From Phyllobates terribilis (taxonomy: Eukaryota): a stretch of DNA of 64,000 nt. Position 1 is the stretch's first letter, and every line of letters starts with the position of its first letter. Under the pieces are notes generated by a model. The model saw only the letters and a list, made by a program, of their open reading frames with translations, was not told where the DNA came from and did no database searches. This document shows positions 27,120-50,204 of this stretch, piece by piece. The stretch lies in NCBI RefSeq assembly GCF_046119375.1, contig NW_027362761.1, positions 396,304,001 through 396,368,000 on the forward strand. The letters are read 5' to 3'. The position numbers were made by a program, and so were the translations under genes.

Positions 27120-29850
27120 TAGCGATGGGGAACCCCTGGATGCTCGGGTACGGAGAGTTCGGCCGAACAGCAATTAAAAGTTAAGGTTTCGGGTACCAGA
27201 ACAGAACCCAAACCTGCATTCTTCTGAATGGGGGACTAGAACATCCAAACAGGGGTTTTGATTGACGGTAGCATAGTTAAAATAGGTCAGAGTGCTGCGA
27301 GAGTGCTGTCAGGTGTCAGTGTGATCCTGCAGCTGTCACTGTGACCAGCAGTAAAAAGCTTACCGTGGGTCACAGGTGCCAGCTGATGAGACTACTACTC
27401 CCGTCAGCTGATGCCTGCTGTCACTGATAACAGCGAGAGCAGGCGCCACTGGATGGGAGAAATAGTCACTCATCAGCTGGCACCTGTGCTCAAAGTAAAA
27501 AAAAAGATGTTAAAATTATTAAATTATTTTTTAACTAAAACAAAAAAACACATTATACTCACCTACACCTAATCTCGATGCCCTTTTTTACCCCTGTAAA
27601 AAATAAAAAAGACCATATACTCACCTTAACGCCTTATCCACGATGCCCATGTCACCTGTAAAAAAATCAAAAATAAACTACCATATCCCTCACCTGTTTG
27701 CCGTAATTCCAGTAATCCAGATTGGATCATTTACAGAACAGTCACATTGGGAGATGTGACTTTGCTATCCGGTAGCCCGCGATACACTGACAAGAGAATA
27801 ATGACTCCTGCAGTGTATAGCACTAATCTGTCATGAAATAGGTCACACAAGTTCATCAGCTGATGAACTTCTATGACCTCACTTACGGCACCACCGCTGC
27901 ATGAGAAAATTCTCACGCAGCGGTGATGCAGTAAGTGAGATCACTTGAGCTCATCAGCTGCTGTACTCATGTGACCTCTCTCTTTGCAGCTCAGCACTAA
28001 GCACTGACTATGCGATTACACTCCTGTGTCAATGTCAGACTGCTGTCATGTAGATCAGTCACATCAGTGACTGCTGATGTAACTGCTCTACATTTGATCC
28101 AATCGCCGTGGGATACTCTGGTTTATTTAATCACGTCGGACAGGTGAGGGATATGGTTGTTTTTATTTTTGTTTTTTTACCAGGGACAATGGATTCAAAT
28201 GGATTATGTTTTAGTTGAGTATAAGGTTAATTTTTATATTTTCTGTTTTTACAGGGGACAATAGTTTCAGGGGATTAGGCGTTAGGTGAGTATACTGTGT
28301 TTTTTATTTTCAAATAAATGATAAAAACCGTATGGACTTTCATTTCAAATAAAGGATTTTTTTTCAGGCCGTGTGTTTATTTTCAAACTTGTACTATGGG
28401 GTTAGCAATGGGGGCGTCTTACAGATGCCTCTCCATCACTAACCTGGGCTTCATGTCAGCTGCCAATACAAACCTGACAGGAACCCCATCCCTGTTACCC
28501 CACTTGCCCCCCCATCAGGGCAAGTGGGAAGAGCGAGGCTAAGTGCCAGATATGGCGCATCTTATTGATGCACCATTTCTGGGGCAGTGGAGAGCGGATG
28601 TTATTAGCCTTGAAGGGGGCCAGTATCTATGGCCCCTTCCCTGGCTATTAAAATCAGACAGCAGCTGTCTGGTTAGCCTTCGCTGTTTAGATTTTTAGGG
28701 GGACCCTGAGTCAAAATTTTTCTGGGGTTCCCCTGTAATCTAGCCAGTAAGCGCTAAGCAAACTGCTTTGGGCTGTTATTAATAGCCTGGGAACATCTAT
28801 AGCTAATGGCCCCTTTCCATGGCTAGTAAAATCAGCCCACAGTGGTTGGCTTTCCCTCTGCTGGTTATGAAAATTATACAATAGGCCACGCCATTTTTTT
28901 CATTTATTTTTTTATTTATTACAGTATAATAGTATAATACACACCCAAGGTAACCTTAGTTCCAGGTGTTCCAGCTGCTGGAAAGTCCAGTGAACCTTAA
29001 ATGTCCCCTAAAGTTTCCCATGAGTTTTCAGGGCTTTGCAGCTGCCGGGAGACCAAGTGACTTTGAATTCGAGTGGCTTTGAACTTTATCTGATGAGCTC
29101 CGGTGATCTCACTCACTGCACCATCGCTGCGTGAGAATTTTCTCACCAAGCGGTGGTAGCAAACGTGAGGTCACAGGAGTTCCTCAGCTAATGAACTTGT
29201 GTGACCTCTCTCACAGCAGCTCAGCACTATATACTGTGGGAGCGATTACGCTCCTGTCAGTGTATCACTGGCTGCCAGATAGAGCAGTAATATCTCCCGA
29301 TTTGACTGTTTTGTAAATGATCCGATCACCGAGTGACAATCTAGATTACCGGGATTATGGCAGACAGGTGATAGATATGGTGGTTTATTATTTTTGTTTT
29401 TTTACAGGTGACATGGCCATCGGGGATAAGGCGTTAAGATGAGTATATGGCCTTTTTTTACAGGGGACAAAGGCATCGAGGATTAGTTGTAGGTGAGTAG
29501 AATGTGTTTTTAATTTTTATTTCAATAATTATTTATTAATTTTAACTTTTTTTTTTTACTTTGAGCACAGGTGCCGGCTAATGAGAGACTACTTCTCCCA
29601 TCCAGCGGCGCCTGCTCTCTCTGTTAACAGTGTCAGCAGGTGTCAGCTGATGGGAGTAGAAGTAAGCTTTTTACCACAGGTCACAGTGACAGCAGGGGGA
29701 TTACTCTGATATCTGATAACGTGATCCTGCAGCACTCTGACCTGCGGTAACTATGTGACCGTCGATCAGAGACCCTGTTTCCTGCACTGTCAGGCAGATG
29801 ACAGCTCAGAAAACACCCGAACTCGAACAGTAACACGGACTTCCTGAGTC
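27120..29850. mobile_element. Older foldback non-autonomous element (hAT-like subtermini)
   Basis: 27290-28000 is a degenerate inverted repeat of 29100-29760; CGAAC motifs near the ends; no intact TIR or TSD. Confidence 0.6.
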
Positions 29851-30189
29851 AATTGATTTCTTCATTTTTCGTTTTTCACTTGAAATATAAATTATTATAT
29901 ATTAGCTATCTCTTTTCTACTCTCATCATTTATATTTTCTAAGCATTATTTAGCTTTCAGACTTGCATTGAAACTTATCATTGAATCTTTGAACATAAGT
30001 TTCACCTGCTCTTCATAATTTCTTTATAGTTTTAAGGTTGTAAGTAGTGTTGAGCATTCCGATACTGAAATATCGGGTATCGGCCGATATTCGCGGTATC
30101 GGAATTCCGATACTTAATTCCGATACTATTGCAATATCGTATACCGGAATCGGAAGTTCCCATAATGCAATGAGACATTTTCATTTTAT

Positions 30190-30320
30190 TCAGCCAATGA
30201 GGATCCTAAGAAGTGTGGGCACATCCTGCTAGGCATGTAGGCATCTTAACTAATGGCATGGCTGTGATTGGCTGCTGAAATGATGTCATGATGCACTATA
30301 AAAGCCACCGCCGCCATTTT
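30190..30320 (+). promoter_or_regulatory. Putative Pol II promoter of the transposase
   Basis: CCAAT 30194-30198, ATTGG 30267-30271, TATAAAAG 30297-30304, YY1-type GCCGCCATTTT 30310-30320. Confidence 0.6.
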
Positions 30321-30419
30321 GAGCTCACTCTGCTGTGAATTCAGTTAGGGATAGGACGCTGTTGTTCTGAGGGACAGTTTTAGCTACCTATTTGCTCTAT
30401 ACTGCTTTACCCAAGCTAC

Positions 30420-31497
30420 TTTCTAAATCACTGTGCCTTGCAGTGCTAGTGCACAGTTCCCTGTGCTGTTCACCGCTATCTGCAAGGTCTGTGTGTGTGA
30501 GTGCAGCTCACCCTGTAGTGTGTGCTTCAGCCAAGTCTGGTTGTAGTGCACTCAGTGTGTGTCACTGCCTCATACATTGTCCTTTTTTGCCAATTCATAA
30601 TTTTTCCTGATATCTCCTATTAGTGTGGTGGTTCCATCTGTATTCAGCTAAATTGGTTCCAAACACACTATATAGGAGTAGATAGAGAAATTTTTTTCCG
30701 TCTTGCAGCACTAGTGCACAGTGCTCTGCATCTGTACTGTTCACCGCTGTCTGCAAGGTCTGGTGTGTGAGTGCAGCTCACCCTGTAGTGTGTGCTTCAA
30801 CCCCGTCTGGTTGTAGTGCACTCAGTGTGTGTCACTGCCTCATACATTGTCCTTTATTGCCAATTCATAATTTTTCCTGATATCTCCTATTAGTGTGGTG
30901 GTTCCATCTGTATTCAGCTAAATTGGTTCCAAACACACTATATAGGAGTAGATAGAGAAATTTTTTTCCGTCTTGCAGCACTAGTGCACAGTGCTCTGCA
31001 TCTGTACTGTTCACCGCTGTCTGCAAGGTCTGGTGTGTGAGTGCAGCTCACCCTGTAGTGTGTGCTTCAACCCCGTCTGGTTGTAGTGCACTCAGTGTGT
31101 GTCACTGCCTCATACATTGTCCTTTATTGCCAATTCATAATTTTTCCTGATATCTCCTATTAGTGTGGTGGTTCCATCTGTATTCAGCTAAATTGGTTCC
31201 AAACACACTATATAGGAGTAGATAGAGAATTTTTTTTCCGTCTTGCAGCACTAGTGCACAGTGCTCTGCATCTGTACTGTTCACCGCTGTCTGCAAGGTC
31301 TGGTGTGTGAGTGCAGCTCACCCTGTAGTGTGTGCTTCAACCCCGTCTGGTTGTAGTGCACTCAGTGTGTGTCACTGCCTCATACATTGTCCTTTATTGC
31401 CAATTCATAATTTTTCCTGATATCTCCTATTAGTGTGGTGGTTCCATCCATATTCAGCTAAATTGATTCCAAACACACTATATAGGAGTAGATAGAG
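30420..31497. repeat. 4 x 270-bp tandem repeat between promoter and ATG
   Basis: GTGCAGCTCA at 30501, 30771, 31041 and 31311. Confidence 0.95.
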
Positions 31498-31852
31498 GAG
31501 CCTTTCTGCAGCATTGGGCCCTGCAGCCCCAGCCAGATTAGTATTAGCCTATTTTTTGCAGCCTCATCTATTGCATTGTATGTTACCTTCCTACATTGTA
31601 ATAGCTACAAAAAGTTTGTGATACTATCGTTATTACATCTTTAGGCACATCCAGTGTCTTTTTGTGACAAAAAAAACCTAAATAAAGTTCACCAAACACT
31701 CCACTTTACAGTTGTGTAGGCCACATTAGCTCATATTAAAGTCTAGTCCACACTTTATAAAATTAGTGTTTCTTATACCTGTTAGCAGCTGTTCAGGAAT
31801 AAGCACACTAAGCCCTTAGTACTTTTCTGCCTATCTTTATCAGTCTACCAAG

Positions 31853-34800
31853 ATGAAGAAGGCAGGGAGTAAGGCATGTGGTCGTGGTCGTGGGCGTGGG
31901 CGTGGAGTTTCTGCAGGGAGAGGACGTGAGGATTCTGTGCCTGCAGGGAGAGGACGTGGGGATTCTGTGCCTGCTGCGGGCACCAGTGACTCAGCATCCC
32001 CCAGTTTTACCAGGGAACAGTCCTTTATGCGCAGCTTTGTAGGAGCTAGCCGTACCCCACTGCTGCGCGAGGACCAAATTGAAGCCGTTGTCGGATGGAT
32101 GGCAGCTAACGCATCGACTTCAATTAGTTCCAGATCCTCTCAGGTCCTGAGCACTGAAGAGCACCCATCTGTCTCTTCACCACCTGCCAAATTGCCCAGG
32201 CAGTCAGAGAGCCCTGGACAGGAGCCATCTCTACTTCTGTTCTCTGAATCTCTTGGCTTGGAAAGAGGGGGCCAGCCAAGCAGAATTCGAGAATTTGAAG
32301 AAGAGGTAGTATGCAGTGATGCGCAACCGTTTTGTCTCTCTGAATCTGAAGAGGCGGGTGGGCCAGTGCCTATGGTCAGCAGCACACCTCAGTACGCATC
32401 TGATGATGAGACTCAGGTGCCACTTTCTGGTGCGTACTGTGCTGTCGAGACTACCCAGGAGAAGCAGTTGTTTGAAGAGGGTGGTGTAGATGATGAGGTC
32501 CTTGACCCATCATGGCGTGAGGGACAGGAAGGTGGTGGGAGCAGCTCTGAGGAAGAGATTCCCCGAACGGCCCAAAAAGGAGGGAGAGGGAGGGGGCAGA
32601 CTTGGTTGCCTGTAGCCTCCACTTCGGCACCCATTAGGAGCATGGCTCTTCCAAAATCCAAAGCGGGCGCTCCCAAGACTTGCAGTGCCTGGTCCTTTTT
32701 TGACACAGTTGCAGATGACATTTGCTTTGTCAAATGCAAGCTGTGTAATCAGAAGGTGAAAAGAGGGAAAAGTGTCAGCAACCTCAATACCACAAATATG
32801 TGGAAACATGTGCGGACCAAGCACGTGGTGGAGTTACACAAACACACTGAAGACCTAGGCCAACCTACAGCGCCACCTACCACCTCTTCAGCTCGTGTTG
32901 TAGCCTCTTCCTCCAGCTCACACACAGCTGGTTCGGCTTCCTCACAGGATCGCCATGGAAGAATCTCTGGCACTGTTGTACAGAGACACAGTGTAATTCC
33001 ACCCACAGCACCACTTTCCCAGTCATCCTCACACTCCCAGGCCAGTCTACAGCCATCGTTAGCACAGGCATGGGAGAAAAGGCGCCCATACTCGGCAAAC
33101 CACCCCCGAGCACAGGCTCTGAATGCTGGCATTGCTAAACTACTGGCCCTTGAAATGCTATCATTCAGGCTGGTGGAGACTGACACATTCCGTAACTTTA
33201 TGGCATTGGCAGTCCCACAATACAACGTGCCCAGCCGCTTTTATTTCAGCAGGCAAGCCGTCCCTGCCCTGCAACATCATGTGGAGGGAAAAATTAAACA
33301 TGCGCTACAAAACGCCGTCAGTAGCAAGGTCCACCTGACCACTGATGCGTGGACCAGTAAGCATGGACAGGGACGATACCTTTCCCTCACTGCCCATTGG
33401 GTAAATGTTGTGGAGCCGGGTACAGATCTTGAGAGTGGCGCTGTACGTGTTCTGCCAACTCCAAGGATTGCAGGAATCCAGTCTGTACACATTGACTCCT
33501 CCTCATACTCCAGTTCCTCTGAATCAGCGCTGCAGGAGCCGTCACGGTCTACCTCCACATCGACCCGTGAACGGTTACCTGTTATGATGACCGATATGAG
33601 CACAGCCGTGGCCAAACGTCAACAGGCCGTATTAAAATTAATTTCTTTGGGGAATCGAAGCCACACAGCGCAGGAGCTCTGGAATGCCATCAAGCAGCAG
33701 AGTGACGTGTGGTTTGTGCCAGCGAATCTCCAGCCAGGCATGGTAGTGTGTGACAATGGCCGAAATCTGGTGGCAGCTCTGGGCCTAGGCAACCTCACTC
33801 ACATCCCATGTCTGGCACATGTGCTCAACTTGGTCGTGCAGAGTTTTTTGAGGGACTATCCGGATCTTGATGCACTGCTTCACAAGGTCCGCATAGAGTG
33901 CGCTCACTTGCGGCGTTCCAGCAATGCAAGATCACGCATTGCAGCTCTGCAGCGCCGATTATGTCTTCCGGAACATCGCATCATATGTGACCTACCCACC
34001 AGGTGGAATTCAACGTTACATATGTTGGAGAGGTTGTGTGAGCAGCAGGCAGCAGTAATGGAGTACCAGCTGCAGCAGGCGCAAACAAGTCGCAGTGCGC
34101 GCCGTTCACACTTCACCACCACTGAGTGGGCCTCTATGAAGGACATTTGCCACGTTTTGCGTGCCTTCGATTATTCCACGCGGATGGCGAGTGCAGATGA
34201 TGCACTAGTCAGCATGACTATCCCCCTTATCTGCCTGCTTGAAAAAACACTGCAAGCACTAAGGGACGAGGTTTTGGAAGAGGTGGAGGATGAGGAGTCA
34301 CAAATGCCATCTGCTTCTCTACAGTCTGCGCAACGTGGTTCCTCACAAAGGCCTAGGCAGGGGACACTTTGTGAGGAGGATGAGGAGGAGTCAATGGATG
34401 AGGAAGACATCTGTCCAGAGCAGGGAGGTACACAATGCTCTAGTAGTCAGTATCTAGAGCGAGGGTGGGGTGATGCAGAGCAGGCAGAGATCACGCCTCA
34501 AGCAGGGGACAGCGTTTCTTGGCCAGTTGGCAGTCTGCAGCACATGGTTGATTTCATGCTGCAGTGCCTCAGAAACGACCGCCGCATCGCCCACATTCTC
34601 AACACGGCTGATTATTGGGTGTCCACCCTCCTAGATCCTCGCTACCGGGACAACTTACAAAGCCTCATAACACCATTGAACCGGGAGCGTAAAATGCGGG
34701 AGTACCAAGACGCACTGGTGCATTCCATCATGTTCTCCATTCCAACCGAGAGCAGTGCTGCTAGTGCTTTACAAAGCAGCTCAGTGCGTCGAGGCAGTGG

Positions 34801-35245
34801 AGGAAGCTCTGCACAAAGAGGGAGCAGAAGCAGCGCCTCAGCACAAGGCAAGACCAGCATGGCCGAAATGTGGCAAAGTTTTGTGTCCCCACCGCCACAA
34901 ATGTCTACACCATCACAGACAGCTCCAGTCAGCAGGAGGCAACGTTTCCGTCAGATGGTGACAGACTACATGTCTTGCCCTCTTAGTGTACTCCCAGACG
35001 GCTCTTCTCCCTTCAAGTTTTGGGTCTGTAAGCTGGATACATGGCCAGAGTTTAGTCAGTATGCACTGGAGGTGCTAGCTTGCCCTGCTGCTAGTGTATT
35101 ATCGGAACGCGTCTTTAGTGCCGCAGGTGGTGTACTAACAGACCGTCGCATGCGACTATCCTCCGATAACGTTGACCGGCTTACTTTTCTCAAAATGAAC
35201 AAGGCCTGGATCTCTCATGAATTTGCCAGTCCTCTTCCAGAATAA
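31853..35245 (+). CDS. hAT transposase, 1130 aa (BED zinc finger, DDE, C-terminal dimerisation domain)
   Basis: RG-rich N-terminus; AWSFF..CKLC..KHVRTKH; HLTTDAW; VCDNG; PCLAH; TRWNST; SVLSERVFSAAG..RLSSDNVDRLTFLKMN; AATAAA overlaps the stop (35241-35246). Confidence 0.97.
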   Translation: MKKAGSKACGRGRGRGRGVSAGRGREDSVPAGRGRGDSVPAAGTSDSASPSFTREQSFMRSFVGASRTPLLREDQIEAVVGWMAANASTSISSRSSQVLSTEEHPSVSSPPAKLPRQSESPGQEPSLLLFSESLGLERGGQPSRIREFEEEVVCSDAQPFCLSESEEAGGPVPMVSSTPQYASDDETQVPLSGAYCAVETTQEKQLFEEGGVDDEVLDPSWREGQEGGGSSSEEEIPRTAQKGGRGRGQTWLPVASTSAPIRSMALPKSKAGAPKTCSAWSFFDTVADDICFVKCKLCNQKVKRGKSVSNLNTTNMWKHVRTKHVVELHKHTEDLGQPTAPPTTSSARVVASSSSSHTAGSASSQDRHGRISGTVVQRHSVIPPTAPLSQSSSHSQASLQPSLAQAWEKRRPYSANHPRAQALNAGIAKLLALEMLSFRLVETDTFRNFMALAVPQYNVPSRFYFSRQAVPALQHHVEGKIKHALQNAVSSKVHLTTDAWTSKHGQGRYLSLTAHWVNVVEPGTDLESGAVRVLPTPRIAGIQSVHIDSSSYSSSSESALQEPSRSTSTSTRERLPVMMTDMSTAVAKRQQAVLKLISLGNRSHTAQELWNAIKQQSDVWFVPANLQPGMVVCDNGRNLVAALGLGNLTHIPCLAHVLNLVVQSFLRDYPDLDALLHKVRIECAHLRRSSNARSRIAALQRRLCLPEHRIICDLPTRWNSTLHMLERLCEQQAAVMEYQLQQAQTSRSARRSHFTTTEWASMKDICHVLRAFDYSTRMASADDALVSMTIPLICLLEKTLQALRDEVLEEVEDEESQMPSASLQSAQRGSSQRPRQGTLCEEDEEESMDEEDICPEQGGTQCSSSQYLERGWGDAEQAEITPQAGDSVSWPVGSLQHMVDFMLQCLRNDRRIAHILNTADYWVSTLLDPRYRDNLQSLITPLNRERKMREYQDALVHSIMFSIPTESSAASALQSSSVRRGSGGSSAQRGSRSSASAQGKTSMAEMWQSFVSPPPQMSTPSQTAPVSRRQRFRQMVTDYMSCPLSVLPDGSSPFKFWVCKLDTWPEFSQYALEVLACPAASVLSERVFSAAGGVLTDRRMRLSSDNVDRLTFLKMNKAWISHEFASPLPE

Positions 35246-35309
35246 ATAATTGGTTGACAACAGTATCCAGGTCTCCTGTTCTGTTCATGTTTCTACCACC
35301 TGAACTGTA

Positions 35310-38300
35310 ATCCCTGAGCTCCAACACCGCCAGTTGGCGCTCGGAAGTGCCGTCTGCACAGTCAACACTTGCTGCCGTGTTATTGGGGTTCAGTAACGTC
35401 AGCTGTTCTCCTGCTGTGCGGACGGCAATTTCTCCTGATTTGTCCACATCCACTGTACTACACATTTTAAAGTTGCTCCAATTACTCCTCTGGCTCCTCT
35501 GTTTTCATTCTTATCCCTGGGCTCCAGCACCGCCAGTTGGCGCTCGGAAGTGCTGTCTGCACAGTCAACACTTGCTACCATGTTATTGGGGTTCAGTAAC
35601 GTCAGCTGTTCCCCTGCTGTGCGGACGGCAATTTCTCCTGCTCTGTCCACATTCTCACTACTACAGATTTTAAAGTTGCTCCAATTACACCTCTGGCTCC
35701 TCTGTTTTCATTCTTATCCCTGGGCTCCAGCACCGCCAGTTGGCGCTCGGAAGTGCCGTCTGCACAGTCAACACTTGCTGCGGTGTTATTGGGGTTCGGT
35801 AACGTCAGCTGTTCCCCTGCTGTGTTCACGGCAATTTCTCCTGCTCTGTCCATATTCACTGTGCTACTTATTTAAAACTTGCTCCAATTACACCTCTGGC
35901 TCCTCCGTTTTTAGTATTTACCCTGGGCTCCAACACCGCCAGTTGGCGCTCGGAAGTGCTGTCTGCACAGTCAACACTTGCTGCCGTGTTATTGGGGTTC
36001 AGTAACGTCAGCTGTTCTCCTGCTGTGCGGACGGCAATTTCTCCTGCTTTGTCCACATCCACTGTACTACACATTTTAAAGTTGCTCGAATTACACCTCT
36101 GGCTCCTCTGTTTTCATTCTTATCCCTGGGCTCCAGCACCGCCAGTTGGCGCTCGGAAGTGCCGTCTGCACAGTCAACACTTGCTGCCGTGTTATTGGGG
36201 TTCAGTAACGTCAGCTGTTCTCCTGCTGTGCGGACGGCAATTTCTCCTGCTTTGTCCACATCCACTGTACTACACATTTTAAAGTTGCTCGAATTACACC
36301 TCTGGCTCCTCTGTTTTCATTCTTATCCCTGGGCTCCAGCACCACCAGTTGGCGCTCGGAAGTGCCGTCTGCACAGTCAACACTTGCTACCATGTTATTG
36401 GGGTTCAGTAACGTCAGCTGTTCCCCTGCTGTGTTCACGGCAATTTCTCCTGCTCTGTCCATATTCACTGTGCTACTTATTTAAAACTTGCTCCAATTAC
36501 ACCTCTGGCTCCTCCGTTTTTAGTATTTACCCTGGGCTCCAACACCGCCAGTTGGCGCTCGGAAGTGCTGTCTGCACAGTCAACACTTGCTGCCGTGTTA
36601 TTGGGGTTCAGTAACGTCAGCTGTTCCCCTGCTGTGCGGACGGCAATTTCTCCTGCTCTGTCCACATTCTCACTACTACAGATTTTAAAGTTGCTCCAAT
36701 TACACCTCTGGCTCCTCTGTTTTCATTCTTATCCCTGGGCTCCAGCACCGCCAGTTGGCGCTCGGAAGTGCCGTCTGCACAGTCAACACTTGCTGCCGTG
36801 TTATTGGGGTTCAGTAACGTCAGCTGTTCTCCTGCTGTGCGGACGGCAATTTCTCCTGATTTGTCCACATCCACTGTACTACACATTTTAAAGTTGCTCC
36901 AATTACTCCTCTGGCTCCTCTGTTTTCATTCTTATCCCTGGGCTCCAGCACCGCCAGTTGGCGCTCGGAAGTGCTGTCTGCACAGTCAACACTTGCTACC
37001 ATGTTATTGGGGTTCAGTAACGTCAGCTGTTCCCCTGCTGTGCGGACGGCAATTTCTCCTGCTCTGTCCACATTCTCACTACTACAGATTTTAAAGTTGC
37101 TCCAATTACACCTCTGGCTCCTCTGTTTTCATTCTTATCCCTGGGCTCCAGCACCGCCAGTTGGCGCTCGGAAGTGCCGTCTGCACAGTCAACACTTGCT
37201 GCGGTGTTATTGGGGTTCGGTAACGTCAGCTGTTCCCCTGCTGTGTTCACGGCAATTTCTCCTGCTCTGTCCATATTCACTGTGCTACTTATTTAAAACT
37301 TGCTCCAATTACACCTCTGGCTCCTCCGTTTTTAGTATTTACCCTGGGCTCCAACACCGCCAGTTGGCGCTCGGAAGTGCTGTCTGCACAGTCAACACTT
37401 GCTGCCGTGTTATTGGGGTTCAGTAACGTCAGCTGTTCTCCTGCTGTGCGGACGGCAATTTCTCCTGCTTTGTCCACATCCACTGTACTACACATTTTAA
37501 AGTTGCTCGAATTACACCTCTGGCTCCTCTGTTTTCATTCTTATCCCTGGGCTCCAGCACCGCCAGTTGGCGCTCGGAAGTGCCGTCTGCACAGTCAACA
37601 CTTGCTGCCGTGTTATTGGGGTTCAGTAACGTCAGCTGTTCTCCTGCTGTGCGGACGGCAATTTCTCCTGCTTTGTCCACATCCACTGTACTACACATTT
37701 TAAAGTTGCTCGAATTACACCTCTGGCTCCTCTGTTTTCATTCTTATCCCTGGGCTCCAGCACCGCCAGTTGGCGCTCGGAAGTGCCGTCTGCACAGTCA
37801 ACACTTGCTACCATGTTATTGGGGTTCAGTAACGTCAGCTGTTCCCCTGCTGTGTTCACGGCAATTTCTCCTGCTCTGTCCATATTCACTGTGCTACTTA
37901 TTTAAAACTTGCTCCAATTACACCTCTGGCTCCTCCGTTTTTAGTATTTACCCTGGGCTCCAACACCGCCAGTTGGCGCTCGGAAGTGCTGTCTGCACAG
38001 TCAACACTTGCTGCCGTGTTATTGGGGTTCAGTAACGTCAGCTGTTCCCCTGCTGTGCGGACGGCAATTTCTCCTGCTCTGTCCACATTCTCACTACTAC
38101 AGATTTTAAAGTTGCTCCAATTACACCTCTGGCTCCTCTGTTTTCATTCTTATCCCTGGGCTCCAGCACCGCCAGTTGGCGCTCGGAAGTGCTGTCTGCA
38201 CAGTCAACACTTGCTACCATGTTATTGGGGTTCAGTAACGTCAGCTGTTCCCCTGCTGTGCGGACGGCAATTTCTCCTGCTCTGTCCACATTCTCACTAC

Positions 38301-38760
38301 TACAGATTTTAAAGTTGCTCCAATTACACCTCTGGCTCCTCTGTTTTCATTCTTATCCCTGGGCTCCAGCACCGCCAGTTGGCGCTCGGAAGTGCCGTCT
38401 GCACAGTCAACACTTGCTGCGGTGTTATTGGGGTTCGGTAACGTCAGCTGTTCCCCTGCTGTGTTCACGGCAATTTCTCCTGCTCTGTCCATATTCACTG
38501 TGCTACTTATTTAAAACTTGCTCCAATTACACCTCTGGCTCCTCCGTTTTTAGTATTTACCCTGGGCTCCAATACCGCTAGTTGCTGCTCAGAAGTGCCG
38601 TCTGCACAGTCAACGCTTGCTCCAGTGTTATTGGGATTCAGTAACGTCAGCTGATCCCCAGCTGTGTGTCCGGCAAATTCTCCTGCTTTGTCCACATCCA
38701 CTGTAGTACGGATTTAAAACCTCCTCCAAATACACCTCTGGCTCTTCTGTTTTTAGTATT
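35310..38760. repeat. 203-bp satellite, about 17 monomers, with a 1421-bp (7-mer) higher-order repeat
   Basis: Identical ORF-track peptides at offsets of 1421 (35347/36768, 35550/36971, 35956/37377). Confidence 0.97.
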
Positions 38761-41700
38761 TACCCTGGGCTCCAGCACCGCCAGCTGGTTCTCGGCAGTT
38801 CCATTGGCTCTTGTACCTTCTGCTACCCATCCGGGTTCCAGTACCGTCAGCTGGTTCTCGGCAGTGTCTTTGGCACGGGTACTCCCTCCTGCCCAGCCTG
38901 GTTCCCGCACGCCAACTGTTTCCGGGTAGTGTCAACGTCACTTTGCCTCCAATGCGTTGTCCTGTCGTGTTGCGGTCGGGTTAGCCGACTCTATGGTGCC
39001 TGCAGTTTAGGTGACTCCTATGTGGGCTGCGGGATCTGGCAATGAAGGCTGGTTCCATAGTGCCAATAGGACAAGCACCCTCTGTAGGACTGTGGGTTTT
39101 GGTAACTGCGGCCGGCTCGCGGCCTTGAACTTTTTTTTTACATGGGTACCTTCTGCTACCCATCCGGGTTCCAGTACCGTCAGCTGGTTCTCGGCAGTGC
39201 CTTTGGATTAGGTGCCTCCTTCTCGGTATCCAAGTTCCACCAACGTCTGCTGGTCCTTGGTAGTGCTTTCTGGCACAGGTACCTCCTGCTTAGTAACCGA
39301 GTTCCAGTAACATCAGCTGGTCCTCGGTAGTTCCATTGGCTCTTGTACCTTCTGCTACCCATCCGGGTTCCAGTACCGTCAGCTGGTCCTCGGTAGTTCC
39401 ATTTGCTCTTGTATCTTCTGCTACCCATCCGGGTTCCAGTACCGTCAGCTGGTCCTCGGTAGTTCCATTTGCTCTTGTATCTTCTGCTACCCATCCGGGT
39501 TCCAGTACCGTCAGCTGGTTCTCGGCAGTGCCTTTGGATTAGGTGCCTCCTTCTCGGTATCCAAGTTCCACCAACGTCTGCTGGTCCTTGGTAGTGCTTT
39601 CTGGCACAGGAACCTCCTGCTTAGTAACCGAGTTCCAGTAACATCAGCTGGTCCTCGGTAGTTCCATTGGCTCTTGTACCTTCTGCTACTCATCCGGGTT
39701 CCAGTACCGTCAGCTGGTCCTCGGTAGTTCCATTTGCTCTTGTATCTTCTGCTACCCATCCGGGTTCCAGTACCGTCAGCTGGTTCTCGGCAGTGTCTTT
39801 GGCACGGGTACTCCCTCCTGCCCAGCCTGGTTCCAGCACGCCAGCTGTTTCCGGGTAGTGTCAACGTCACTTTGCCTCCAATGCGTTGTCCTGTCGTGTT
39901 GCGGTCGGGTTAGCCGACTCTATGGTGCCTGCAGTTTAGGTGACTCCTATGTGGGCTGCGGGATCTGGCAATGAAGGCTGGTTCCATAGTGCCAATAGGA
40001 CAAGCACCCTCTGTAGGACTGTGGGTTTTGGTAACTGCGGCCGGCTCGCGGCCTTGAACTTTTTTTTTACATGGGTACCTTCTGCTACCCATCCGGGTTC
40101 CAGTACCGTCAGCTGGTTCTCGGCAGTGCCTTTGGATTAGGTGCCTCCTTCTCGGTATCCAAGTTCCACCAACGTCTGCTGGTCCTTGGTAGTGCTTTCT
40201 GGCACAGGTACCTCCTGCTTAGTAACCGAGTTCCAGTAACATCAGCTGGTCCTCGGTAGTTCCATTGGCTCTTGTACCTTCTGCTACCCATCCGGGTTCC
40301 AGTACCGTCAGCTGGTCCTCGGTAGTTCCATTTGCTCTTGTATCTTCTGCTACCCATCCGGGTTCCAGTACCGTCAGCTGGTTCTCGGCAGTGTCTTTGG
40401 CACGGGTACTCCCTCCTGCCCAGCCTGGTTCCAGCACGCCAGCTGTTTCCGGGTAGTGTCAACGTCACTTTGCCTCCAATGCGTTGTCCTGTCGTGTTGC
40501 GGTCGGGTTAGCCGACTCTATGGTGCCTGCAGTTTAGGTGACTCCTATGTGGGCTGCGGGATCTGGCAATGAAGGCTGGTTCCATAGTGCCAATAGGACA
40601 AGCACCCTCTGTAGGACTGTGGATTTTGGTAACTGCGGCCGGCTCGCGGCCTTGAACTTTTTTTTTACATGGGTACCTTCTGCTACCCATCCGGGTTCCA
40701 GTACCGTCAGCTGGTTCTCGGCAGTGCCTTTGGATTAGGTGCCTCCTTCTCGGTATCCAAGTTCCACCAACGTCTGCTGGTCCTTGGTAGTGCTTTCTGG
40801 CACAGGTACCTCCTGCTTAGTAACCGAGTTCCAGTAACATCAGCTGGTCCTCGGTAGTTCCATTGGCTCTTGTACCTTCTGCTACCCATCCGGGTTCCAG
40901 TACCGTCAGCTGGTCCTCGGTAGTTCCATTTGCTCTTGTATCTTCTGCTACCCATCCGGGTTCCAGTACCGTCAGCTGGTCCTCGGTAGTTCCATTTGCT
41001 CTTGTATCTTCTGCTACCCATCCGGGTTCCAGTACCGTCAGCTGGTTCTCGGCAGTGCCTTTGGATTAGGTGCCTCCTTCTCGGTATCCAAGTTCCACCA
41101 ACGTCTGCTGGTCCTTGGTAGTGCTTTCTGGCACAGGTACCTCCTGCTTAGTAACCGAGTTCCAGTAACATCAGCTGGTCCTCGGTAGTTCCATTGGCTC
41201 TTGTACCTTCTGCTACCCATCCGGGTTCCAGTACCGTCAGCTGGTCCTCGGTAGTTCCATTTGCTCTTGTATCTTCTGCTACCCATCCGGGTTCCAGTAC
41301 CGTCAGCTGGTTCTCGACAGTGTCTTTGGCACGGGTACTCCCTCCTGCCCAGCCTGGTTCCAGCACGCCAGCTGTTTCCGGGTAGTGTCAACGTCACTTT
41401 GCCTCCAATGCGTTGTCCTGTCGTGTTGCGGTCGGGTTAGCCGACTCTATGGTGCCTGCAGTTTAGGTGACTCCTATGTGGGCTGCGGGATCTGGCAATG
41501 AAGGCTGGTTCCATAGTGCCAATAGGACAAGCACCCTCTGTAGGACTGTGGGTTTTGGTAACTGCGGCCGGCTCGCGGCCTTGAACTTTTTTTTTACATG
41601 GGTACCTTCTGCTACCCATCCGGGTTCCAGTACCGTCAGCTGGTTCTCGGCAGTGCCTTTGGATTAGGTGCCTCCTTCTCGGTATCCAAGTTCCACCAAC

Positions 41701-43070
41701 GTCTGCTGGTCCTTGGTAGTGCTTTCTGGCACAGGAACCTCCTGCTTAGTAACCGAGTTCCAGTAACATCAGCTGGTCCTCGGTAGTTCCATTGGCTCTT
41801 GTACCTTCTGCTACCCATCCGGGTTCCAGTACCGTCAGCTGGTCCTCGGTAGTTCCATTTGCTCTTGTATCTTCTGCTACCCATCCGGGTTCCAGTACCG
41901 TCAGCTGGTCCTCGGTAGTTCCATTTGCTCTTGTATCTTCTGCTACCCATCCGGGTTCCAGTACCGTCAGCTGGTTCTCGGCAGTGCCTTTGGATTAGGT
42001 GCCTCCTTCTCGGTATCCAAGTTCCACCAACGTCTGCTGGTCCTTGGTAGTGCTTTCTGGCACAGGTACCTCCTGCTTAGTAACCGAGTTCCAGTAACAT
42101 CAGCTGGTCCTCGGTAGTTCCATTGGCTCTTGTACCTTCTGCTACCCATCCGGGTTCCAGTACCGTCAGCTGGTCCTCGGTAGTTCCATTTGCTCTTGTA
42201 TCTTCTGCTACCCATCCGGGTTCCAGTAGCGTCAGCTGGTTCTCGGCAGTGTCTTTGGCACGGGTACTCCCTCCTGCCCAGCCTGGTTCCAGCACGCCAG
42301 CTGTTTCCGGGTAGTGTCAACGTCACTTTGCCTCCAATGCGTTGTCCTGTCGTGTTGCGGTCGGGTTAGCCGACTCTATGGTGCCTGCAGTTTAGGTGAC
42401 TCCTATGTGGGCTGCGGGATCTGGCAATGAAGGCTGGTTCCATAGTGCCAATAGGACAAGCACCCTCTGTAGGACTGTGGGTTTTGGTAACTGCGGCCGG
42501 CTCGCGGCCTTGAACTTTTTTTTTACATGGGTACCTTCTGCTACCCATCCGGGTTCCAGTACCGTCAGCTGGTTCTCGGCAGTGCCTTTGGATTAGGTGC
42601 CTCCTTCTCGGTATCCAAGTTCCACCAACGTCTGCTGGTCCTTGGTAGTGCTTTCTGGCACAGGTACCTCCTGCTTAGTAACCGAGTTCCAGTAACATCA
42701 GCTGGTCCTCGGTAGTTCCATTGGCTCTTGTACCTTCTGCTACCCATCCGGGTTCCAGTAACATCAGCTGGTCCTCGGTAGTTCCATTGGCTCTTGTACC
42801 TTCTGCTACCCATCCGGGTTCCAGTACCGTCAGCTGGTTCTCGGCAGTGCCTTTGGATTAGGTGCCTCCTTCTCGGTATCCAAGTTCCACCAACGTCTGC
42901 TGGTCCTTGGTAGTGCTTTCTGGCACAGGTACCTCCTGCTTAGTAACCGAGTTCCAGTAACATCAGCTGGTCCTCGGTAGTTCCATTGGCTCTTGTACCT
43001 TCTGCTATCCATCCGGGTTCCAGTACCGTCAGCTGGTCCTCGGTAGTTCCTCAGCTTTCTTGTACCTTCT
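38760..43070. repeat. Composite satellite: 63-bp subunits inside about 270-330-bp blocks inside 929/598-bp units
   Basis: Unique block recurs with offsets 929, 598, 929, 929 (ORF track 38981, 39910, 40508, 41437, 42366). Confidence 0.95.
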
Positions 43071-43124
43071 GCTACATTTCCAAGTTCAAGCTTTTTGAAA
43101 TGGTTCTTGGTAATCACTCTGGAT

Positions 43125-43960
43125 CTCCCTGACGAGGACCCTGAAGACGAGGACCCTGAAGACCAACCCTAAGAAGACGAGGACCCCGAAGACAATGACG
43201 CTGAAGATGAGGACCCTGAAGACCACCCCGAAGAAGACGAGGACCCTGAAGACCACCCCGAAGAAGACGAGGACCCTGAAGACCACCCCGAAGAAGACGA
43301 GGACCCCGAAGACGAGGACCCAGAAGACCAACCCGAAGAAGACGAGGACCCCGAAGACGAGGACCCCCGAAGACGACGACCCTGAAGACCACCCCGAAGA
43401 AGACCAAGAAGATGACCCTGAAGAAGTTGACCAAGAAGACAAAGAAGAGAAGACAAGCACCAAGATACAGAAAAACAAGAGACAGAAAACCAAGAAGCAG
43501 AAATACAAGAAGCTGCAGAACAAAAAGCGGAAGAACATTAAGCATAAGACTAAAAATCAGAGCAAAAGATAATATCTAAATTATAAGCAGAAGATGACTA
43601 AGCAGTGTATGGGGGTGAGTCCGTTCCTCCTCGTGGTGCCCCTGGAAAAGACCTGCTGCTGCAGGCCAAACTGAACGCGGACAAATCCTGTTGTAAATCT
43701 TTTGTGACGGGCAGAACGAAAGGTGTAATGTCCAACCTTTTATAGATAACAACTACAGGAATGCCTGTCACAAATAAGAATATGATGAAGAAGAAGAATA
43801 TGAAGAAGATGAAGAAGTAGAATATGAAGAATGTAAAAAAAAGAATAATACGAAGAAGGTGAAGAAGAAGAAGGTGAAGAAGAAGTGGATGAAAAAGATG
43901 CTGAGGATGATGAAGGAGAAAGTGTGGGAGAAGTAAAAAAGAAGGTGAAGAGCATGGAAG
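43125..43960 (+). repeat. GAAGAC/GAA-rich low-complexity region
   Basis: About 30-bp unit GAAGAAGACGAGGACCCTGAAGACCACCCC, then GAA-rich tracts. Confidence 0.85.
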
Positions 43961-44881
43961 TAGTGAAACATAAATATCTGACAAAATATAAAAATACTTA
44001 ACATAGTTAATATTTCCGTAACTCAGAACATAATAAAAAAATATTAATTCCTGCTATTCCATTTGACTGGGCTAAACCTCTATGCCTTTATTGTCTCCCC
44101 CACCTCCCCCAATACATTCTACATTATTCTTAGTTGTTTTCCTTCATGTAGAAATAACCTACAAGGAAAGAAAGGGTTTATTTTAATTCCGATATTTATG
44201 TCCCATTGACTTGCATTGGTTTCCGGTATCGGAATCGGCGATATCCGATACTTTTTCGGTATCGGTCCGATCCAATCCGATCCGATATTTCCCGATATCG
44301 GAAGGTATCGCTCAACACTAGTTGTAAGGTTAAATCCATTGAGTTCAACCTAATGCCTAATATTTTCAATCAAAGGATGTCACTTATCAACTACCAATGA
44401 CAGTGCAGGCTCCAGTTTCTATGCTGCATAATATAATCCGGCACCTCACCACCTGATGTTGCCACAAACATATGTTCCAACATATGCAATGGTAAATTCG
44501 ATCACATTTCAATTTTTCATCAGCCTGAGGCTCAGTCATACTGCTCCATCATAAATCCTGGTGGTCATTTTTCACCATTATAGAAACATTGCTCTTCTGG
44601 CAATGATCACAACTTTGTCTCAGGTGAAATATATGTTTTAAATAATATTGCAGGATCAAATTGAGAGTGTGTATCATGCAGTGAGCATGTGCTACTTTTC
44701 ATGGCAGCCATAATGTTTCCAGCGTTGTTATTTACCTGCTTGTGTTTGATTAGAAACCATCCTGTGAGACATTTGATACAATATTGTACTCTATTTTTGG
44801 TGAAAACAAGGAGATGTGCATTTTGGAGGTTATGGAGAAAGTTTATAAACATCACCTGCTGTGGATGTATTATCTCATCAC

Positions 44882-47800
44882 TAGAGATGAGCGGTGTTCG
44901 ACTAGAACTGTTCGCCAATCTCAAATTCGAGCTGTTTTGGGCGGTGTTCGAGTTGTTCGACGAACCCGAACGATTTGCAAAAAATTCGGCTGTTCGAGGT
45001 TATGTTCGATAACTGTTCGTACACCAAAAGCGTGTCCTGCATGGATTGTCTGCCACTCACTGTAATGCCACAGCCATGGTGGTTGTGGCATTACAGTGAT
45101 TGCCCAAATCGATGGGAACAGTGCCAACAGTGAAACATGAAAAGCCGGCAATTCAGCAGCGGCATACACCGGTACCCGACAATTTAGAACCGAAAGAATA
45201 GAGCATCACACATAGATTAGATAGATAGAAACATGTCAGCCACATATATACGAAGTACAGTGAAAGTGCTGGTTACTGTACTTGTCATTTAGCGTAAAGG
45301 ATTTATCAAAAAAAATAATAGTGTTTTCATGCACCGTCTCTTTAAAAAAGCCGGCCGGCAATTCAGCAGCGGTACCCGACAATTTATAACAGACAGAATA
45401 GAGCTTCACACATAGATTAGATAGATAGAAACATGTCAGTCACATATATATGAAGTACAGTGATAGTGTTGGTTACTGTACTTGTCATTTAGTATTAAAA
45501 TAAAGGATTTATTATTAAAAAAATTGGCGTGGGGTTCCCCTTAATTTTAGGCTCTAGCGGAGGTTAAGCAGACGGCTGGGGCAGATGTTTGAAGCCTGGG
45601 AAGGGGGTAATACCCACGGAGCTTCCCAGGCTACTAATATCAGCCCCCAGCTGAATACATAGCCTTTACTAGCTATTAAAATGGGGGACCCCCCAAAAAA
45701 AATGACGTGGGGTCCCCCCTAATTTAATAGCTAGCAAAGGCTAGGCAGACAGCTGGGGGCTGATATTAATAGCCCAGGAAGGGAGCCATGAATATTGGCC
45801 CCCTCCCAGGCTAGAAACACCAGCCGTCAGCCGCCCCAGAAATGGCGCATTCATAGGATGCGCCAATTCTGGCACTTAGCCTCGCTCTTCCACGCTGCCC
45901 TGGTGCGGTGGCAGGGGGTAATAGGGTTGGGGTTGATGTCAGCTTATAATGCCAGCTGACATCAAGCCCAGGTTAGTAATGGAGAGGCGTCTATAAGACA
46001 CCCCCATTACTAACCCCATAGTCAAAGTTAAAAAAAACACAAACACCCAGAATAAAGTCCTTTAATTGAAATAAAGACACAGTCCTTTATTGTTCTAAAT
46101 TAAACCATACTTACCGTCACGCCCATTCCAGCTGAAGCCAACGATCTCCTGCAATAAAAGAAAAATAATAAAGCAACCTCATCCTTACCTTTCCATGGTT
46201 CCCACGACAGCTTCAGCTCTGCTACATCGAGATGACAGGCTGGACCGCAGCAGAACGCTGCCATCCAGCCTCTCATCCCGCAGACACTGAGAAGCGCAGG
46301 CTTGCTTGCGCTGCTCAGCGTCTCTCTGTGACGACATCCAGATGAGCCGAGTTCATGTCCAATGAACTCGGCTCACCTCATGCACGTCACTGACAGCGTG
46401 GGAAAATTCTCAAGCTGAAGCGCTGAGTGCAGGAGAATTTTCCCACGCTGTCAGTGACGTGCATAAGGTGAGCTCATGTCCAATGAACTCAGCTCACCTC
46501 CTGCACGTCACTGACAGCGTGGGAGAATTCTCCTGCACTCAGCGCTTCAGTGTGAGAATTCTCCCACGCTGAAGCGCTGAGTGCAGGAGAATTTTCCCAC
46601 GCTGTCAGTGACGTGCATGAGGTGAGACGAGTTCATTGGACATTAACTCGGCTCATCTGGATGCCCTCACAGAGAGACACTGTGGAGCGCAAGCAAGCCT
46701 GCGCTTCTCAGTGTCTGCGGGATGACAGACTGGATGGCAGCGTTCTGCTGCGGTCCAGCCTGTCATCTCGATGTAGCAGAGCTGAAGCTGTCATGGGAAC
46801 CATGGAAAGGTAAGGATGATGTTGCTTTATTATTTTTCTTTTATTTCAGGAGATCGTTGGCTTCAGCTGGAATGGGCGTGATGGTAAGTATGGTTTAATT
46901 TAGAACAATAAAGAATTGTGTGTTTATTTCAATTAAAGGACTTTTTTCTGGGTGTTGTGTTTTTTTTAAATTCTTTACTAGAAATTCATGGTGGTCATGT
47001 CTAATATTGGCGTGACCCCATGAATTTCGGGCTTAGGGCCAGCTGATAATGCCAAGCTGGCCCTAACCCCTTTATTACCCAGTGAGCCACCGCATCAGGG
47101 CCCTGGATGAGTTGGGTACAGCGCCAGAAGATGGCGCTTCTATGAACGCGCCATTTTCCGGGGTGGCTGCGGACTGCAATTTGCAGCGGGGGTGGCCCAG
47201 AAAGCTTGGGCCTCCCTGCGCTGCGGATTCCAGCCCCCAGCTGCCTAGTTGTACCTGGCTGGACACAAAAACAGGGCGAAGCCCCACGTCAATTTTCTTT
47301 AAATTATTTCATGAAATAATTAAGAAAAAAGGGCTTCCCTATATTGCTGTGTCCGGCCAGGTACAAATAGGCAGCTGGTGGTTGGGGGCAGCCCGTTCCT
47401 GCCTGCTGTACCTGGCTGGACACAAATATAGTGCGAAGCCCCACGTCAATTTTTTTTAAATTATTTCATGAATTTCCTGAAATAATTTAAAAAAATTGAA
47501 GTGGGGCTTCGCACTATATTTGTGTCCAGCCAGGTACAGCAGGCAGGAACGGGCTGCCCCCATCCACCAGCTGCCTATTTGTACCTGGCCGGACACAACA
47601 ATATAGGGAAGCCCTTTTTTTCTTAATTATTTCATGAATTTCATGAAATAATTAAAAAAAAAGTACGTGGGGCTTCGCCCTATTTTTGTGTCCAGCCAGG
47701 TACAACTAGGCAGCTGGGGGCTGGAATCTGCAGCGCAGGGAGGCCCAAGCTTTCTGGGCCCCCCCCCGCTACAAATTGCAGTCCGCAGCCACCCCGGAAA

Positions 47801-50204
47801 ATGGCGCGTTCATAGAAGCGCCATCTTCTGGCGCTGTACCCAACTCATCCAGGGCCCTGGTGCGGTGGCTCACTGGGTAATAAAGGGGTTAGGGCCAGCT
47901 TGGTATTATCAGCTGGCCCCAAGCCCAAAATTCATGGGGTCACGCCAGAATTAGACATGACCGCCATGAATTTCTAGTAAAGTATTTAAAAAAAACACAA
48001 CACCCAGAATAAAGTCCTTTAATTGAAATAAAGACACAATTCTTTATTGTTCTAAATTAAACCATACTTACCATCACACCCATTCCAGCTGAAGCCAACG
48101 ATCTCCTGCAATAAAAGAAAAATAATAAACCAACCTCATCCTTACCTTTCCATGGTTCCCACGACAGCTTCAGCTCTGCTACATCGAGAAGACAGGCTGG
48201 ACCGCAGCAGAACGCTGCCATCCAGTCTGTCATCCCGCAGACACTGAGAAGCGCAGGCATGCTTGCGCTCCTCACTGTCTCGCTGTGACGGCATCCAGAT
48301 GAGCCGAGGTCATGTCCAATGAACTCGGCTCACCTCATGCACGTCACTGACAGCGTGGGAAAATTCTCACGCTGAAGTGCTGAGTGCAGGAGAATTCTCC
48401 CACGCTGTCAGTGATGTGCATGAGGTGAGCTCATGTCCAATGAACTCAGCTCACCTCCTGCACGTCACTGACAGCGTGGGAAAATTCTCCTGCAATCAGC
48501 GCTTCAGCGTGAGAATTTTCCCACGCTGTCAGTGACGTGAATGAGGTGAGCCGAGTTCATTGGACATGAACTCGGCTCATCTGGATGTCGTCACAGAGAG
48601 ACGCTGAGCAGCGCAAGCAAGCCTGCGCTTCTCAGTGTCTGCGGGATGACAGGCTGGATGGCAGCGTTCTGCTGCGGTCCAGCCTGTCATCTCGATGTAG
48701 CAGAGCTGAAGCTGTCGTGGGAACCATGGAAAGGTAAGGATGAGGTTGCTTTATTATTTTTCTTTTATTGCAGGAGATCGTTGGCTTCAGCTGGAATGGG
48801 CGTGATGGTAAGTATGGTTTAATTTAGAACAATAAAGGACTGTGTCTTTATTTCAATTAAAGGACTTTATTCTGGGTGTTTGTGTTTTTTTTAACTTTGA
48901 CTATGGGGTTAGTAATGGGGGTGTCTTATAGACGCCTCTCCATTACTAACCTGGGCTTGATGTCAGCTGGCATTATAAGCTGACATCAACCCCAACCCTA
49001 TTACCCCCTGCCACCGCACCAGGGCAGCGTGGAAGAGCGAGGCTAAGTGCCAGAATTGGCGCATCCTATGAATGCGCCATTTCTGGGGCGGCTGACGGCT
49101 GGTGTTTCTAGCCTGGGAGGGGGCCAATATTCATGGCTCCCTTCCTGGGCTATTAATATCAGCCCCCAGCTGTCTGCCTAGCCTTTGCTAGCTATTAAAT
49201 TAGGGGGGACCCCACGTCATTTTTTTTGGGGGGTCCCCCATTTTAATAGCTAGTAAAGGCTATGTATTCAGCTGGGGGCTGATATTAGTAGCCTGGGAAG
49301 CTCCGTGGGTATTACCCCCTTCCCAGGCTTCAAACATCTGCCCCAGCCGTCTGCTTAACCTCCGCTAGAGCCTAAAATTAAGGGGAACCCCACGCCAATT
49401 TTTTTAATAATAAATCCTTTATTTTAATACTAAATGACAAGTACAGTAACCAACACTATCACTGTACTTCATATATATGTGACTGACATGTTTCTATCTA
49501 TCTAATCTATGTGTGATGCTCTATCTTTCTGTTCTAAATTGTCGGGTACCGCTGCTGAATTGCCGGCCGGCTTTTTTAAAGAGACAGTGCATGAAAACAC
49601 TATTATTTTTTTAAATAAATCCTTTACACTAAATGACAAGTACAGTAAGCAACACTGTCACTGTACTTATTATATATGTGACTGACATGTTTCTATCTAT
49701 CTAATCTATGTGTGAAGCTCTATTCTTTCTGTTCTAAATTGTCGGGTACAGATGCTGAATTGCCGGCCGGCTTTTTTAAAGAGACGGTGCATGAAAACAC
49801 TAATATTTTTTTTAATAAATCCTTTACACTAAATGACAAGTGCAGTAACCAACACTGTCACTGTGCTTCTTATATGTGTGACTGACATGTTTCTATCTAT
49901 CTAATCTATGTGTGATGCTCTATTCCTTCTTGTCTAAATTGTCGGGTACCGGTATATGCCGCTGCTGAATTTGCCGGCCGGCTTTTTTAAAGAGAGTGTC
50001 TTCTGAGCAGTTTGTCAGCTTTTGGACACCTTTGCAGGTGTTTTCTATGTGTTTCTATGTGTTTTTGTTTGCCTGCCATTGGTTTTAACGGTGTTCGACG
50101 GTGTTCTAAGGTGTTCGACGAACAGTTCGACGAACAGTTCCTCGAACATCCCGGTGTTCGACGAACCGAACCGAACCCGAACACTATGGGGTGGCTCAAC
50201 ACTA
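44882..50204. mobile_element. 5,323-bp non-autonomous hAT-type foldback element
   Basis: TAGAGATGAGC ... GCTCAACACTA; TSD CTCATCAC at 44874-44881 and 50205-50212; interior is a palindrome centred at about 47473; no transposase. Confidence 0.95.

Follow-up and report, generated by a model that had tools for sequence, protein, structure and literature searches.

In a 64,000-nucleotide stretch of the Phyllobates terribilis genome (RefSeq assembly GCF_046119375.1, contig NW_027362761.1, forward-strand positions 396,304,001 to 396,368,000; hereafter the window, whose own numbering is used throughout), we identified a hAT transposable element of 14,276 bp at 30045-44320, which retains its terminal inverted repeats (TIRs), a target-site duplication (TSD) and the open reading frame (ORF) of its transposase. 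We consider it likely that this copy is full-length and probably competent for transposition, that it belongs to a young and very abundant autonomous hAT family of dendrobatid frogs, and that the tandem arrays that make up most of its length are passenger DNA. The family appears to have an Ac-like target pattern and a ZBED-type transposase. A preliminary description of this DNA had reported an intact hAT element of which about 65% is satellite DNA, and our analysis bears this out: the TIRs and the TSD are perfect, the frame of 1130 amino acids is open, and the arrays total approximately 9.4 kb, or 66% of the 14,276 bp.

All of the sequence characters of the hAT superfamily that we tested were found in the element. 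The 8-bp TSD GTTGTAAG agrees with the target pattern nTnnnnAn, the 11-bp TIR TAGTGTTGAGC is perfect and starts with TAGNG, and both ends carry clustered subterminal repeats. When counted on both strands, the motif CCGATA occurs seven times in the left 100 bp, seven times in the right 130 bp and three times in the 14 kb between them; shuffling gave an expectation of about six occurrences across the whole element, so that the terminal clustering exceeds chance. In Hermes, the BED domain binds subterminal repeats, and the target preference is likewise nTnnnnAn (PMC10368747); by analogy, the clustered motifs are putative sites for the BED domain of the transposase. The window is free of N, and no second copy of the element was found in the rest of its 64 kb.

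The transposase contains the Pfam domains zf-BED (PF02892, E 2e-8) and Dimer_Tnp_hAT (PF05699, E 4.5e-13), both over the curated cut-offs. Comparison with the Hermes structure chains by phmmer aligned the stretches TTDAWT, VCDNGRN, CLAHVL, PTRWNST and SERVFS with the catalytic stretches of Hermes, and every catalytic motif of that enzyme is kept (D498, D634, C653/H656 of the CxxH motif, W718 of the RW motif, and E1085). Because a 48%-identical relative of 1135 amino acids aligns across the whole length of the protein, its long N-terminal part is no artefact of ORF calling. The nearest proteins are frog gene models named 'ZBED4/6-like', with the top match, from Ranitomeya variabilis, being 85-87% identical and the remaining dendrobatid models about 50% identical. 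A database look-up of the exact 1130-residue protein returned no record, and a metagenome scan found no relative. The closest annotated relative, from R. variabilis (85% identity over 1094 amino acids), is described as a KRAB-transposase fusion of 1296 amino acids and sits within a KRAB zinc-finger gene cluster; either the annotation is chimeric, or a KRAB zinc-finger protein gene has captured a transposase.

Tandem arrays were called with Tandem Repeats Finder and self-BLAST, and all of them (30437-43951) lie within the unit bounded by the TSD and TIRs. The 203-bp array is built from a seven-unit block of 1421 bp that is present twice (1418 of 1421 positions identical), after which come two units that match units 2-3 exactly and one degenerate unit, while the monomers within one block are approximately 89-98% alike. 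In the 66-bp array, most 120-bp windows have three to four perfect copies elsewhere in the array. The higher-order blocks are 99.8-100% identical, and about 5 kb of the element was therefore made by very recent block duplication or homogenisation. Each 203-bp unit holds two diverged copies of the 66-bp core, which gives both large arrays a common origin, and 38767-39145 forms a transition zone between them. The preliminary description had listed four different array units; the arrays themselves were confirmed, but the unit given as 63 bp measures 66 bp, and the 203-bp and 66-bp units are related through their shared core. This core, which includes CCGCCAGTTGGCGCT, lies in positions 1-100 of the 203-bp unit (for example at 35310-35410) and has a putative resemblance, at 13 of 15 positions, to a CTCF-type consensus.

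Two possible roles for the arrays were considered and set aside. Additional binding sites for the transposase were rejected because no CCGATA motif occurs in the arrays. A coding or RNA function also found no support: the arrays gave no match in Rfam at E <= 0.1, six ORFs from the arrays and the tail matched no Pfam family above cut-off, and the array ORFs are interrupted every 80-150 codons, so that coding potential is not credible.

Other copies of the element were assessed through contigs of public DNA and RNA runs, both by their word content and by placing the contigs of four runs on 29600-35599; these four comprised two DNA runs of the same species (X1 and X3), an RNA run (X11) and a run of another species, here organism F (X27). 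Contigs of the DNA runs, which covered at least three samples of the same species from several studies, contained 0.89-0.97 of the words of the ORF, and those of RNA runs contained about 0.9; with two other species included, the range was 0.84-0.97. For the 3' part (38800-44320), the recovered share of words was 0.84-0.91 in DNA runs and about 0.6 both in RNA runs and in those of two other species; the words found in the DNA runs include the 203/66 transition and the tail, in runs that hold no assembled single-copy flank. Depth rises from about 0 to about 24,000 in the bin 30000-30199, which contains the left TIR. The flank has a depth of 0 in X1 and of 0.06% of the element depth in X3, and the left end is as deep as the ORF in the DNA runs. 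Contigs that bear unrelated flanks meet the element at 30041/30045; these represent other insertion sites and independently support the left boundary at 30045. A contig of 3,863 nt from the RNA run (31476-35338, 15 differences) covers the whole ORF and continues 28 nt into the first 203-bp unit, and a contig of organism F spans 34922-35338. Since both cross the junction unbranched, the copies that predominate in those data have the 203-bp array joined to the ORF. An other-species contig differs from this copy at only 3 positions in 1,408 nt, and in other copies there are joints at which 270 or 812 bp of the 5' leader array are skipped.

Based on the ratios of binned, contig-summed depths, which are rough and are not copy numbers (the X3 flank is itself somewhat repeated), the number of 270-bp units per ORF is 2.9 in X1, 2.2 in X3, 4.1 in X27 and 2.6 in X11, as compared to 3.9 in this copy. 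The corresponding values for the 203-bp unit are 9.1 in X1, 6.1 in X3, about 30 in X27 and about 93 in X11, with 17.2 in this copy. The 203-bp array described here is thus about two to three times the genome-wide mean per ORF, consistent with a freshly duplicated block. Taken with the shared junction, these rough depth ratios support the arrays as a standing part of the family. The proposal of the preliminary description that the element carries arrays therefore extends to other copies, which share the junction of ORF and array as well as the 3' words, and the possibility it had raised that all other intact copies lack arrays is contradicted by that junction, by the 3' words and by the mean units per ORF in the public runs. 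Its further proposal that the element seeds satellite arrays gained no support from the DNA of the same species: the 203-bp unit reaches only about 6-9 times the ORF depth there, below the 17 units of this copy, as compared to about 30 times in organism F; at the roughness of these ratios, the same species has no surplus of 203-bp units that would suggest large free-standing satellites.

Of the ORF differences from other copies that were listed, which are the best-supported subset, 10 of 13 are synonymous (binomial p = 3.5e-4 against an expected 28%). These differences therefore arose in lineages with the transposase under purifying selection rather than by the decay of dead copies. Dating of the insertion by its divergence from the family majority was rejected, as mostly synonymous differences mark a separate selected sublineage and not neutral decay. 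Recent and possibly ongoing activity of the element, as the preliminary description had suggested, is likely and has indirect support from the intact motifs, the TSD and TIRs, the near-identical copies found across many individuals and two other species, the synonymous bias, and an RNA library in which the full ORF is present, although such libraries can contain DNA.

The features of the element are collected in Table 1.

Table 1. Features of the hAT element, in window coordinates unless residues are stated.
Feature	Position	Strand	Remarks
Left TSD GTTGTAAG	30037-30044	.	same 8-mer at 44321-44328
Left TIR TAGTGTTGAGC	30045-30055	+	11 bp, perfect
Left subterminal region	30056-30140	.	7 CCGATA/TATCGG motifs; putative BED-domain sites by analogy with Hermes
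Promoter-like stretch	30190-30310	+	CCAAT at 30194, ATTGG at 30267, TATAAAAG at 30297-30304; putative function, from sequence alone
5' leader array	30437-31497	+	about 270 bp x 3.8-3.9; upstream of the ORF; units 92-97% alike
Transposase ORF	31853-35245	+	1130 codons, uninterrupted
BED finger	residues 279-324		of the 1130-residue protein
hAT dimerisation region	residues 1038-1114		of the 1130-residue protein
AATAAA	35241-35246	+	possible poly(A) signal; overlaps the stop codon
203-bp array	35310-38802	+	17.2 units; begins 64 bp past the stop codon
66-bp array	38767-43075	+	about 65 units; 929-bp (14-unit) block x4 plus one 598-bp version
Low-complexity tail	43137-43951	+	30/15-bp GAAGAC-type and AAG-type repeats at 43137-43537 and 43776-43951
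Right subterminal region	44185-44309	.	7 CCGATA/TATCGG motifs
Right TIR GCTCAACACTA	44310-44320	-	exact reverse complement of the left TIR
Right TSD GTTGTAAG	44321-44328	.	directly adjoins the right TIR

With respect to the putative transcription signals, one RNA contig starts already at 30179, ahead of the promoter-like stretch, and the RNA contig that covers the ORF continues to 35338, beyond the AATAAA.

Several sequences related to parts of the element were observed in the public runs and in the window. In all four runs, many contigs match the first 124 bp of the left end (30045-30168) and then diverge into one common unrelated sequence, which is not present in the window and whose depth in the RNA run is about 14 times that of the ORF; this left terminus is therefore shared by another abundant element or by a deletion derivative. 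A 58-bp piece of the ORF (33724-33781) has 4-7 times the depth of the neighbouring sequence, both in the RNA run and in the other species, and is bordered there by unrelated flanks, and the sequence at the loose end at 33781 was not found in the window; this ORF fragment seems to be embedded in another abundant repeat or transcript. In X27, a copy of the element is interrupted at 32388 by a sequence that ends in GGTGGCTCAACACTA, the terminus of the neighbour-type hAT family; the two hAT families are nested here, one having inserted into the other. The neighbour itself is the next element downstream, of hAT type, at 44882-50204, with the TSD CTCATCAC on both sides, TIRs TAGAGATGAGC and TAGTGTTGAGC that differ by two mismatches, and subterminal repeats of GTTCGA(C) instead of CCGATA. 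It has the outer TIR in common with the element studied here, yet belongs to a different hAT family.

Under the reading that we prefer, a live element with passenger arrays, the BED finger would bind the CCGATA subterminal repeats, and the DDE domain would cut the element out at its 11-bp TIRs and join it into a staggered 8-bp target, as is expected for a member of the hAT family. The standard layout of the family would comprise an array of about 270 bp in the 5' leader and the 203-bp and 66-bp arrays in the 3' non-coding region. Such arrays may arise and vary in length through slippage during replication, unequal sister exchange or template switching in gap repair, and would be copied along with each move of the element, with the copy described here probably having come to the long end of the range through very recent duplication of the 1.4-kb and 0.93-kb blocks. 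The arrays would ride along because internal length costs hAT transposition little. The hAT element Tol2 moves 10-11 kb at full efficiency, and far more at lower efficiency (PMC8151067), so that no benefit is required for such cargo to be kept. A 53%-identical hAT relative on an unrelated ENA contig carries a tandem repeat of 307 bp (within positions 1-640) immediately upstream of its 1135-residue ORF; the repeat is present in two copies that are 97% alike, is cut by the contig end, and is non-homologous to the 270-bp unit. Array formation is thus a recurrent property of this frog hAT clade.

A number of points weigh against this reading. The present-day mobility of the element is what we infer from its sequence features, the synonymous bias was counted on a best-supported subset of the variants, and the array lengths of other copies were derived from summed contig depths and not from a second copy read from end to end. 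Two further observations could hint at a function of the arrays: among the seven block units, the first half of the 203-bp unit, which bears the core, shows about half the variation of the second half, and array RNA is approximately 10-fold over-represented against the ORF relative to DNA (93 as compared to 6-9 units per ORF).

These last two observations bear on the proposal, made in the preliminary description, that the arrays serve the element. In this explanation, the arrays are cis-acting parts selected for the benefit of the element, with the 270-bp monomers acting as promoter or enhancer, and the 203-bp and 66-bp arrays acting as a boundary, a protein platform, or a small-RNA source or sponge that eases silencing. 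It would also account for the arrays being family-wide and common to several species, and for the 53%-identical relative having independently acquired a tandem repeat directly upstream of its ORF. The putative resemblance of the core to a CTCF-type motif would fit it as well. However, the subterminal motifs of the element are missing from the arrays, and neither Rfam nor Pfam, nor the array ORFs, gave a signal. The number of units varies between copies and blocks are duplicated wholesale, so that they are turning over rather than conserved, as expected of unconstrained repeats. In addition, the RNA library may hold DNA or intronic read-through, and such cargo is not costly for hAT elements, given the 10-11 kb that Tol2 tolerates (PMC8151067). 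We therefore regard a selected cis-acting role as unlikely. A more specific version, in which the 3' arrays, with about 100 repeats of a shared core of about 40 nt, form a selected cis-module (a boundary or protein platform, or a small-RNA source) in a currently active hAT element, is in our judgement somewhat more doubtful still; if it were true, such a module would assist an autonomous element of unusual length in attaining very high copy number and near-identity in several species of poison frog.

A one-off local expansion, in which the family is normally array-free or has a single unit and the arrays grew in this insertion after landing, is quite improbable. Its strength lies in the length of the arrays, since the 203-bp units of this copy are about two to three times the genome-wide mean per ORF and the blocks are 99.8-100% identical, which makes no less than about 5 kb very young. 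On the opposite side, the ORF-to-array junction is present in RNA and other-species contigs, 0.84-0.91 of the 3' words occur in runs without an assembled flank, and the means of 6-9 (203 bp) and 2-3 (270 bp) units per ORF are far above zero. This explanation is thus largely refuted: it fails for the presence of the arrays, although part of it holds for their length. The least credible alternative, and a very improbable one, is an artefact of assembly, in which the assembler inflated or wrongly joined the near-identical blocks of an element that is in truth shorter. Stretches of 0.9-1.4 kb that agree at 99.8-100% do pose a difficulty for assembly. On the other hand, typical long reads exceed the length of the arrays (3.5 and 4.3 kb), the variants among the blocks (the 598-bp version and three single-base differences) provide anchors, and the sequence runs without N or breaks.

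When compared to autonomous hAT elements of the Ac/Hermes/Tol2 type, the element has the same 8-bp nTnnnnAn TSD, short TAGNG TIR, subterminal repeats, BED domain, DDE core with CxxH and RW motifs, and C-terminal dimerisation domain. It differs from them in being about three times longer (14.3 kb as compared to 3-5 kb), in encoding a transposase of 1130 amino acids with an N-terminal extension of about 270 amino acids that is conserved in frog relatives, and in consisting of tandem array over two thirds of its length. DNA transposons that bear tandem repeats have been described as FEDoR in Rana temporaria (PMC12054243), the DTC84/pearl miniature inverted-repeat transposable elements, or MITEs, of bivalves (PMC3879986) and Tetris in Drosophila virilis (PMC4079207), and a review covers the central repeats of Helentron/DINE-1 and the MITE-derived satellites of Xenopus, with non-autonomous elements prevailing (PMC9659126). 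Like these, the element studied here is a bounded mobile unit with internal repeats of variable number that are spread by transposition. In contrast to it, those elements are mostly non-autonomous or belong to other superfamilies, whereas this is an autonomous, apparently live hAT with three arrays that have higher-order structure and occupy two thirds of its length. The Xenopus laevis elements 1723 and Tx1, reported in papers of the 1980s, are likewise frog DNA elements with inverted termini, target duplications and variable internal tandem repeats. Autonomous elements with variable arrays in untranslated regions include mouse L1, with monomer arrays in its 5' untranslated region, and plant Ogre, with tandem repeats in its 3' untranslated region. 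However, both are retrotransposons, and the L1 monomers have a demonstrated promoter function, whereas a function of the arrays of this hAT element is hypothetical.

The element is a clear example of a known route by which transposons spread repeat DNA rather than of a novel type of element; that tandem repeats are carried and spread by transposons is an established principle. Its vertebrate hAT transposase is intact and expressed and its ends are defined, which makes it a candidate for a transposition assay and possibly for use as a genetic tool. Poison-frog genomes measure several Gb and are rich in transposons. Elements of the hAT type account for 3.9% of the Dendrobates tinctorius assembly (PMC11152451), and in Oophaga pumilio they amount to 255 Mb (PMC6278860). 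The element also illustrates how dispersed 'satellite-like' DNA arises within a mobile unit. An autonomous hAT element that is abundant and brings about 4-9 kb of arrays with each copy would add repeat DNA far faster than an element of 3-5 kb, which would help to explain genome growth in these frogs.

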